DNA of 63,663 nucleotides, counting the filler, from Olpidium bornovanus S191 (lineage: Eukaryota > Fungi > Olpidiomycota): NCBI GenBank assembly GCA_017911155.1. It is 28 parts of 28 records of this genome, joined end to end, with 100 filler letters (N's around TTAATTAATTAA, not from the genome) between each part and the next. Parts side by side here need not be neighbours in the genome. Positions count along the whole stretch, not along the records: positions 40,397 to 42,432 come from JAEFCI010013182.1; 27 more parts are not named here. One strand, given 5' to 3'. Below, piece by piece: positions 39,834 to 42,432 of the stretch (its first letter is position 1; the number at the start of each line of letters is the position of its first letter). The notes under the pieces are model-generated. The model did not search any database. It was not told the origin of the DNA and saw only the letters and a program-made list of their open reading frames with translations. The position numbers and the translations under genes are program-made.

Positions 39834-40519
39834 GGTTCTTCTTGTTTCCCGCCCGTTCGCGGCGGGCGGCCCACCGCTCGTTTTTCTCCCCGCCCGGCCC
39901 AACCTCGTCCTCCCCCCCACCTCTCTACACTCTCTATTATTACTTTCACTACCCTCTCTCTCTCTAACTCTCTCTCTCTCGAGAGAAAGCGCCGTCCAAG
40001 CCGCGGCCGGGGATTGTCCCGCTTCCTGCGTCGTCCACGCCCCTCCTCGTCCTCGTCCTCGTCCTTCCTCCTTCCTCCTCCTACGCGTTCGTCGCCGCCC
40101 GTGCTTTGAGGCAAACGAAAGAGGGGACGAGAGAGGTGAGACCGGGAGAAGCGGGAAGAGAGCGCGCGGCAGCGGCGCCGTGATTCCCGTGTTTGTTGTT
40201 TTTTCTTTTTTTTCCTTTTTTTTTCACCCCAGGAGCCGCGGGACGCCGCTACGCAGCCGCTTCCGGGTTCGCCGCCAAAGCGGCCAGCCTTTCTGCNNNN
40301 NNNNNNNNNNNNNNNNNNNNNNNNNNNNNNNNNNNNNNNNTTAATTAATTAANNNNNNNNNNNNNNNNNNNNNNNNNNNNNNNNNNNNNNNNNNNNAGCC
40401 CGAGCCAAAAAAGACGCGCAAAAAAAAAAAAAAAAAAAAAAAAAAATAAAAAAAAAAAAAAGGAAGAAAGGGGGGCCCCCACCCCCCCCGGCCCCCCCCC
40501 CCCCCCCCCCGCGGGTGCC

Positions 40520-40575
<56 letters not shown>

Positions 40576-40913
40576 GCGTCGAAGCCCCGGCGGATACCGG
40601 CGCGGAGGACAGCGGACTCCCACCGGGCGGGGAAATCGCGCTCGGGCGAGGACGCAGGGCTTTTTGTGCTGCGGTACCTCTTACCGATTTCCTGCTGCAC
40701 CAAAACTCACCCATCGCCGCAATCCTGTTTCTTCCTGGGTGCGGTGCGCGCAGTGCCGACAACTCGCGAAGTCGCGTTGTTGCCTCACGGCTTTTCCTTC
40801 GATCGGCATTTCCGCCCATCGTCAAAACGACCGCTCGAGCGCACGACGCGTATCCCGGTGCGCCGCGTATCCCGCAAGGAAAGCAGGCCAGGACTGCGTG
40901 TGGAGAAGCGTGC

Positions 40914-42432
40914 ATGGAACATGTCGCGGCCGCCTCGTGGACCTGGACGCGGCCACAAAAAGTGCAGTCAAGAAGAAGGCGCGGACGAAGAAAAGACCGG
41001 CGCTTGGCCGGCTTGTGTATGTCAACACTCGCATCCCTCGTTCTTTTCGCGCACGCGAGCGCGGCAGGAGCCGACGACCCGACATTGGACGTGAGCGGCT
41101 TCGGAAGAGTGTACTATCAGGTTGGTGGAGGGCCAAGCGGTTGGCAAATCGTGTGAAATATTACGACGCCGCGACCTGCGATCGCTCACGCCGGCACTTG
41201 CCCAGAGTTTGGAGGACGACAGCTCGTCCTTCTACGTGAGACGACCGGTGAGATAGACTGGAAAATCAATTGTGCCCATCGAAACGGGATCGGCCGTTCA
41301 CCTTGCCGGATCCAAGTTCCTTTTAGGGTACACGACGGCAGTTTCGAATGTCACTTGGGTACTCCCGCCAACGTGCAGCATTACCACCAACCTGACAGCA
41401 TCGGGTGCGACAGCGCTCGCTCAGTGCTCAGCACGTGGAGCCTCTCGGTTCGGGGTGTATGCGGACGGGGACACGTCAAAGTTGGACGCGTTCTACATTA
41501 CCTTTCAGGAAGATCTCGGCTGTTACACTTGGGTTTTCGGCATTGGCGGGAGTGACGGAGCGGCGCCAGGTCAACTCGTGCCGAACAGTCGCTCGTGGGG
41601 TTACATCTGGGCGGTGGACTGGGCAGTGGCCACAGCTTCCGAGAAGAAGAGTATGGCGACTGCACCATCGAAGGTGCGCGGTGCTCGGGCGTGCGACCGG
41701 ATAAATATGCACGGACCTTGCACTCACCTAGCGTGATGCGGGCCACTATCAGATTTCAATGCTCATATCCGACGGATTACACAACCTTGGGGAGGAGCCG
41801 ACCGTCAATGTTTTGCATAACGTCAACGTAAATTTCACCGGAACCACTTGGCTGGAGACAGAATCGTAAGAAGATATCCGCCGTTCCTACCGCCCGACAA
41901 GGAAATGTACGAAAGCTAACTCCGGCCTTCGTAGTATTTGGATGGTGAATTTCACCACCGGTGAGCCAGGGCTATATGCCACAGAGATCAACGGGAAGGG
42001 CATTTCTGTTCTCAATTGCAAAGTCCGCTCCGCGAAGGTAGCCATCCCGGTACTTAAGGTGGGTTGCCGACGCTTTTGTTACCACGGATTATCCGCACAC
42101 AATACGAGGTTGGTGAACCCCCTGGGTGGAAGCATATCTGACACTTAGGTGTTTTACCCTGCTGTCAGTACTTAGCCCCCTACAATGCGATGTACACCAG
42201 TCTTAAATCGACGCCCGCTGCGTCAGGGATCCCGTTTTCAATCGCGATAGATCCTTGTGCGCCCAACGTCAACTACGTAGTCGGCGGCGACTACATAGGG
42301 TCCGAGGCAGGCATGAACCTGGCTACCACTCAGTTGGGGCTACCGCCATCTCTTGAGAACCCGAACGGCACAGTGCTGCTGTCACTAACGCAGCTTGCAT
42401 CGAGTCTGCCTGCGGATGCGAGCCGCACGATC
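40914..42432 (+). CDS. CATSPERE: CatSper channel auxiliary subunit epsilon (delta/epsilon family) homologue, N-terminal extracellular part; exons about 40914 or 41019-41120, 41257-41673, 41753-41865, 41935-42037 (or 42058), 42169-42432; 3' truncated
   Basis: A signal-like N-terminus is followed by collinear motif matches to human CATSPERE as recalled: WVLPPTC..QCSARG / WSVPETC..RCSSPG; GCYTW / TCFLW; IWAVD / VWAYD; PSKISMLISDGLHNLGEEP / PSINSIVLSTQMATLGQKP; EINGKGISVLNC / EIRGNQVTFQDC. All introns are GT-AG and frame-consistent. Confidence 0.78.

Follow-up and report, generated by a model that had tools for sequence, protein, structure and literature searches.

Gene structure and transcripts

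The window analyzed here is a stretch of 63,663 nucleotides (filler included) from the assembly of Olpidium bornovanus S191. The usable piece for this analysis covers positions 40397–42432, and only the N-terminal third of the gene product is encoded within it. The piece very probably contains the 5′ untranslated region and the first six exons of a gene for an epsilon-type member of the CATSPER delta/epsilon family.

The gene is on the + strand, with six exons and five introns in the piece. All the introns are short (85, 69, 79, 69, and 110 nt, a range of 69–110 nt), with GT..AG boundaries and CTAAC or CTCAC-like branch sites. The 5′ untranslated region covers at least 40579–40913, as defined by the RNA contig from run X4, which is unbroken from ~40579 to 41117, and a scan for ATG codons finds none before 40914. 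The coding part of exon 1 (40914–41120, residues 1–69) is connected directly to exon 2 in the RNA contigs (joint 41120/41206), and intron 1 (41121–41205, 85 nt) is absent from the contigs of runs X1, X4, X8, and X11. Exon 2 (41206–41247, residues 70–83) has 42 nt; it is observed in the RNA contigs and fits the family consensus 'slesdgesfyagrp'. The boundaries of introns 2–5 are likewise defined by RNA contigs.

Intron 2 (41248–41316, 69 nt) is followed by exon 3 (41317–41673, residues 84–202, 119 aa), which, to judge from phmmer matches to CATSPERD/E-family proteins and from the alignment, covers the bulk of N-terminal Ig-like domain 1 and the front half of domain 2. Intron 3 (41674–41752, 79 nt) separates it from exon 4 (41753–41865, residues 203–239 and two bases of codon 240), which encodes the second half of a CATSPERE_NTD2-like domain, based on Pfam and the family alignment. 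After intron 4 (41866–41934, 69 nt, with a CTAAC branch-site-like motif), exon 5 (41935–42058, residues 240–281) completes the second N-terminal domain and carries Cys268, which is conserved in the family alignment. Intron 5 (42059–42168, 110 nt) is skipped in a relative, organism B (run X15), as well. Exon 6 (42169–42432, residues 282–369), placed by the alignment and the RNA contigs, is open and is cut at the edge of the piece. It encodes a linker and the first part of what is the beta-propeller region in the relatives, and can be aligned to residue 323 with the family HMM and to residue 355 with the relative P0011.

The spliced frame has 369 codons without a stop, from the ATG at 40914 to the edge of the piece. 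In the six-frame ORF list, the + strand of the gene shows short fragments only, in agreement with the initial annotation of this DNA, which had described a spliced gene at this location that is broken up by the ORF track. The gene is indeed present there on the + strand, with its joints visible in RNA contigs. The initial annotation counted five exons, one fewer than the six exons (with five introns) found here; the 42-nt exon 2 is easily missed.

Ordinary DNA, with 51–63% G+C, begins at ~40579. The first ~180 bases of the piece (40397–40575) form a large imperfect palindrome, with ~50 A's, a C/G-rich block, and ~47 T's, located directly upstream of the first base of the transcript contig (~40579). 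This homopolymer palindrome may have arisen in assembly, or it may be a genuine promoter region of low complexity. The RNA contigs end at ~40579 because of the homopolymer runs upstream.

Among the public runs labelled organism A, 48–63% of the sampled words of the stretch are present, as expected for an mRNA that lacks its introns. The Logan RNA contigs of runs X1 and X4 match the prediction at each of the five joints, with 0 mismatches, and contigs from two further studies (X8 and X11) show the same joints without a mismatch, as far as they reach. The comparison with RNA junctions that the initial annotation had proposed therefore gives agreement at all five joints, with 0 mismatches, over four studies. 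The X4 contig is 3561 nt long: it starts ~335 nt ahead of the ATG (40914) and extends 2119 nt beyond the edge of the piece, and with this length the mRNA could encode up to ~1075 residues. In the raw reads of RNA runs X21 and X24, zero reads were found on the stretch in the ~6% of each run that was sampled. Soil metagenomes contain partial matches to it.

Several additional forms were observed. In run X1 (record 3), a 128-nt RNA contig (41218–41345) is unspliced across intron 2, with a depth similar to that of the spliced contig. Retention of this intron would lead to a stop (GTGAGATAG), and the read-through could reflect pre-mRNA, intron retention, or carry-over of DNA in the library. In run X12, guessed to be DNA, the sole contig on the stretch (41475–41802) carries the spliced intron-3 joint; either this run is cDNA, or a processed copy exists as DNA.

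The contigs of organism B are 95–99% alike to the stretch and have the intron-5 joint in common with it. There are eleven differences in exon 6, of which seven are synonymous third-position changes and four are non-synonymous when read in the frame defined here. In a minor contig of organism B (42056–42249; depth of 3.9 versus 9.1), the donor of exon 5 is spliced to an AG that lies within exon 6. With this alternative acceptor 192 nt are skipped rather than 110, and the extra 82 nt would shift the frame.

Could this be a decaying or non-functional copy, from which a transcript is still made? The contig that retains intron 2 and its stop, and the frame-shifting acceptor in exon 6 of organism B, would both fit such a copy, and the 5′ third alone is visible in the piece. 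Nonetheless, 369 codons are open across five correctly spliced introns, and spliced contigs dominate in all four studies. Seven of the eleven differences to the sister organism are synonymous, and the residues conserved in the family are all present. We therefore regard decay as very unlikely.

The spliced product and its family

Exon 1 encodes a basic N-terminal stretch, followed by a signal-like hydrophobic segment (41019–41063) that starts at an in-frame methionine, Met36. Judged by eye, the hydrophobic stretch covers residues 36–50, with small residues (ASAAG) after it. The conserved region begins at residue 62 (41097), and the homologs align from residue 61 or 62. The site of translation initiation is ambiguous between Met1 (40914) and Met36 (41019), and a start at Met1 would put 35 basic residues ahead of the hydrophobic stretch. 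The first ATG (40914) has a T at position –3, and a second ATG seven bases on (40921) has an A at this position. The second ATG opens an out-of-frame ORF that ends at 41094 and overlaps the in-frame Met36, and control of the start codon by leaky scanning is possible.

The overall layout of the product is a putative leader, a first N-terminal domain (NTD1, residues ~62–165), a second N-terminal domain (NTD2, residues ~172–275), and a further ~90 residues. After the signal-like segment there are five Cys residues and five N-x-S/T sequons. Four of the cysteines, Cys103, Cys120, Cys152, and Cys268, are located in conserved columns common to the fungal relatives and the mouse protein.

Searches with single exons against Pfam and the PDB found no significant match. 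The best was exon 4 against PF22843 (CATSPERE_NTD2), with an E value of 0.17 over profile positions 45–70 of 86. The other single-exon matches in these two databases (TIP41, SP1372, an envelope polyprotein, and complement factor B) were dismissed as chance.

A phmmer search with exon 3 through 1.84 billion representative proteins finds 21 matches. Nine of them are proteins of 896–1013 aa, mostly from zoosporic fungi, that are matched at their N-termini. PF22850 (CATSPERD-E_C) is present in all nine of these full-length relatives (E values of 1e-21 to 1e-36), and seven of the nine also pass the cut-off for PF22843, immediately C-terminal to the segment that exon 3 matches. The beta-propeller family PF15020 comes near its cut-off of 27 in two relatives, P0008 (26.1 bits) and P0011 (27.9 bits). 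Further members of the cluster carry CatSper delta/epsilon domains as well. Three of the 21 matches, P0009, P0010, and P0020, are from outside the family (an FN3-repeat protein, a DUF3466 protein, and a coiled-coil protein) and represent generic Ig-like or compositional matches.

The membership of the 369-aa product was assessed by HMM and pairwise scripts together with transitive profile evidence. An HMM was built from the first 400 residues of eleven family proteins, with the product itself excluded. The spliced product scores 218.5 bits against this HMM, in a single alignment of residues 62–323 that runs across all the junctions; the best of 500 shuffled sequences scores 6.7 bits. The best pairwise match is a Cladochytrium protein, KAI8815055.1 (P0003, 1002 aa), named 'cation channel sperm-associated protein subunit delta-domain-containing protein', with 136 bits by blastp and 126 bits by phmmer. 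The two proteins have 31% identity over 282 residues and the same N-terminal architecture. The elements common to the product and the family include the conserved Trp and Cys columns, a VY.DGD..T.DTFY strand, and the GCY.W, W.VD(P), and PS..S......G(E).P motifs.

A feature search of the ESM Atlas with exon 3 returned unnamed and metallopeptidase-like clusters (0.77–0.91), with recognition below the reliable level. These leads were dropped, given that the sequence and profile tests all point to CatSper.

No protein with 50% or higher identity to exon 3 was found among the 1.84 billion representatives. A protein homolog search from P0003 returned P0003 alone, a scan of JGI metagenomes with exon 3 gave no match, and an exact look-up of the 68-aa ORF in exon 5 gave none. 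The product therefore seems to be absent from public protein sets, consistent with the initial view that the gene is probably unannotated.

Relationship to CATSPER-epsilon and proposed role

A profile of the N-terminal regions of the family, with the exon pieces of this gene included (profile A1), matches mouse CATSPER-epsilon in the PDB (7EEB chain H, residues 52–251) with an E value of 8.9e-17. No delta chain was found in this search at E values up to 1, and no beta or gamma chain either. Full-length P0003 matches both the epsilon and the delta chains in the PDB, with 104.9 bits (3e-29) for epsilon and 75.8 bits (2e-20) for delta. An AF2 model of residues 1–340 of P0003 (pLDDT 75) contains two beta-sandwich domains. 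The top match of this model with Foldseek is 7EEB chain H, with an E value of 3.6e-11, and generic tandem Ig structures follow from 6e-7. The AF2 model of exon 3 alone is all-beta; 7EEB chain H ranks first for it too, but the match is not significant (E value of 0.14).

The A1 match to 7EEB chain H, the HMM score, and the domains of the relatives together argue from sequence that the product is the N-terminal third of an epsilon-type CatSper canopy subunit, with two Ig-like domains. The assignment to the epsilon type rather than the delta type is based on the A1 profile, which matches epsilon chains only, and on the scores of P0003. The initial annotation had called the locus a CatSper-epsilon homolog in a fungal-type genome, and this reading holds up in light of the RNA junctions, the Pfam domains of the relatives, the HMM score, and the A1 match. 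The comparison by profile and structure that it had suggested leads to the same chain, 7EEB chain H, both for the A1 profile and for the N-terminal model of the relative P0003.

The order of the N-terminal elements in mouse CATSPER-epsilon (7EEB chain H; 9UBW chain H) is the same as that in the product. Both have a leader (a putative one in the product) and a first Ig-like domain with a W..P..C / C / GCY.W pattern, followed by a second domain with W.(V/Y)DP, PS..S..(L/V)T......G(E/Q).P, and a closing Cys. The C-terminal domain of mouse CATSPER-epsilon is also common to the fungal relatives (E value of 3e-29). The identity between the mouse and fungal proteins is ~18–19% in structural alignments, and no single exon of the gene finds the mouse protein directly. 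In comparison, CATSPER-delta (7EEB chain G) has the beta-propeller, Ig-like, stem, transmembrane, and C-terminal parts in common with epsilon. The relatives match it over residues 304–998 (E value of 2e-20), whereas the N-terminal profile that covers this product does not match it.

The initial annotation had singled out a block of 19 residues, PSKISMLISDGLHNLGEEP (residues 200–218, 41665–41800 on the + strand), which it aligned without gaps to human CATSPERE. The alignments with the relatives and the mouse protein indicate that this block is real. It is split by intron 3 and lies across the junction of exons 3 and 4 (41665–41673 and 41753–41800), and corresponds to the PS..S..(L/V)(T/S)......G(E/Q).P motif of the second N-terminal domain. 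In the profile alignments it is positioned opposite the corresponding block of mouse CATSPER-epsilon, PSLSSRVLTKQMNTLGQRP, with 6 of the 19 residues identical and several conservative pairs. The block by itself is not significant, as a phmmer search of the PDB with exon 4 gives nothing but the chance match to complement factor B. The significance comes from the whole spliced N-terminus rather than from these 19 residues.

Four of the proteins recovered (P0005, P0006, P0014, and P0016) are short, like unspliced ORF calls, and end a few residues after the conserved 'PS'. Their end point coincides with the beginning of intron 3 in the present gene (41665–41680; alignment columns ~170–180), which suggests that the position of this intron is common to several zoosporic fungi.

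Mammalian CATSPER-epsilon is one of four single-pass subunits of the channel, with an ectodomain in the canopy over the CATSPER1–4 pore (7EEB; bioRxiv 10.1101/2024.11.18.624146). In the mouse channel, epsilon is paired with CATSPER2, and its transmembrane helix is in contact with S2 of its pore partner. Assembly of the canopy and of the channel depends on the extracellular domains of epsilon, and the entire channel is missing in its absence (bioRxiv 10.1101/2024.11.18.624146).

By analogy, the two thirds of the fungal protein beyond the piece are predicted to contain a beta-propeller and an Ig-like domain, together with a stem, a single transmembrane helix, and a short tail, because the relatives have ~1000 aa and the transcript contig is at least 3.56 kb long. 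The fungal protein would be a type-I membrane glycoprotein, as judged from the mammalian work. Its ectodomain would join those of beta and gamma in a canopy above the CATSPER1–4 pore, and its transmembrane helix would lie packed against helix S2 in the voltage sensor of one pore subunit. The protein may be needed for assembly of the channel and its delivery to the flagellar membrane. The likely site is the zoospore or gamete flagellum, whose beat would change on Ca2+ entry and thereby steer swimming. A role in a CatSper channel of zoospores or gametes is the function that we infer by comparison with the mammalian subunit. The initial annotation had gone further, to a complete multi-subunit complex in the zoospore flagellum, which this piece by itself does not support. 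Mouse CATSPER-epsilon is a sperm protein; the present gene is from a fungus that forms zoospores or gametes, and is known from its N-terminal third.

Delta is reported to be evolutionarily younger than epsilon (Chung et al. 2017, PMC5362262), and for this reason a single delta/epsilon-type subunit is considered for the fungus. Such a subunit could occupy the delta as well as the epsilon position of the four-part canopy, in an ancestral epsilon-epsilon-beta-gamma arrangement, and its divergent N-terminal domains could suit a fungal cue, such as an attractant for gametes or zoospores. We put this forward tentatively and consider it a good deal less probable than the family assignment.

A true delta/epsilon-family protein could also work outside a CatSper channel, if the pore had been lost or the ectodomain had been reused for adhesion or sensing. 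Two observations would agree with such a change: the N-terminus of the product forms a long branch in the tree, and the one piece of the genome in view shows no second CatSper gene. Against it, the accessory subunits follow the pattern of presence and loss of the pore subunits (PMC5362262), and the gene is expressed and has kept the conserved Cys and motif columns. A function outside the channel is improbable on this evidence, and a CatSper subunit is the preferred reading.

Relatives and placement among fungi

The named relatives are from Cladochytrium, Paraphysoderma, Sorochytrium, Entophlyctis, Physocladia, Chytriomyces, Lobulomyces and other Lobulomycetales, and the metamonad Carpediemonas. 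The nearest relatives are proteins of Chytridiomycota and Blastocladiomycota, and the identity between exon 3 and the fungal relatives is only 29–37%. The Carpediemonas membranifera protein KAG9389845.1 (P0021), named 'Cation channel sperm-associated protein subunit delta/epsilon', has 28% identity over 225 residues (83 bits). It contains CATSPERE_NTD2 and CATSPERD-E_C, and as a metamonad protein it is apart from the fungal group in the tree. In this maximum-likelihood tree of the N-terminal regions, the product is placed among the fungal proteins, with 100/100 support versus the Carpediemonas pair. Its branch is long, without a close relative, and the tree gives no resolution of its place within the fungal group.

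The short introns, the branch sites, the perfect matches in many one-organism runs, and the soil metagenomes all fit a zoosporic fungus and speak against an animal contaminant. The initial annotation had raised the possibility of a contig from an animal contaminant; the nearest relatives belong to Chytridiomycota and Blastocladiomycota, and the DNA is therefore not animal. The broader alternative is an unrelated secreted Ig-like protein that resembles CATSPER-epsilon by chance, or such a contaminant. It takes what support it has from the single exons (an E value of 0.17 in Pfam and chance matches in the PDB), from the wide matching of Ig-like folds, and from the Atlas feature search, which pointed elsewhere. 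These observations are outweighed by the HMM score (218 bits, versus 6.7 bits for shuffles), the CatSper delta/epsilon domains in every full-length relative, and the A1 profile, for which CATSPER-epsilon (E value of 8.9e-17) is the only CatSper match in the PDB. The chytrid and blastoclad relatives, the introns of 69–110 nt, and the 100% identity in one-organism runs from several studies argue against it as well. We assign this alternative next to no probability, and it is already refuted as far as sequence evidence can do so.

CatSper-epsilon has been placed at the root of eukaryotes, with the same early origin as CatSper1–4, beta, and gamma, in a study that screened Allomyces, Thecamonas, and Aurantiochytrium (Chung et al. 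2017, PMC5362262). The supplement of a 2026 atlas of fungal flagellar proteins lists orthogroups for CATSPER1–4, B, D/E, G, T, EFCAB9, and TMEM249 that are specific to flagellated fungi, and the CatSper complex is not kept in all flagellated fungi (PMC13358043). Homologs of CATSPERB, G, and D are expressed in Allomyces transcriptomes. In addition, some of the relatives found here are already named CatSper delta or delta/epsilon proteins at NCBI. The novelty implied by the initial annotation was therefore overstated, given these two publications and the NCBI-named chytrid relatives. With non-animal CatSper-epsilon and the fungal CATSPERD/E orthogroups already published, the present gene adds to a known fungal group.

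What stands out in this gene is the missing annotation and the divergence of the N-terminal domains. It adds a further CatSper subunit of the epsilon type, in this case from an organism that resembles zoosporic fungi, and fits the published view of a canopy that predates animals. A reading of the DNA without tools can recover a real spliced gene that is shattered by the ORF track. The finding by itself opens no new question, and a fungus with many RNA data sets could be a simple system for studying the function of the outer domains of the canopy.

In P0021 and its unnamed close relative P0013, the epsilon-type N-terminal domains and the C-terminal domain are both present, and the NTD1–NTD2 architecture is therefore older than the opisthokonts. 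In another protein, P0028 from Lobulomyces angularis (KAJ3380472.1, 1075 aa), an endoribonuclease L-PSP domain (residues 16–137) is fused to an epsilon-type protein. This fusion most likely represents two adjacent genes that were merged by annotation.
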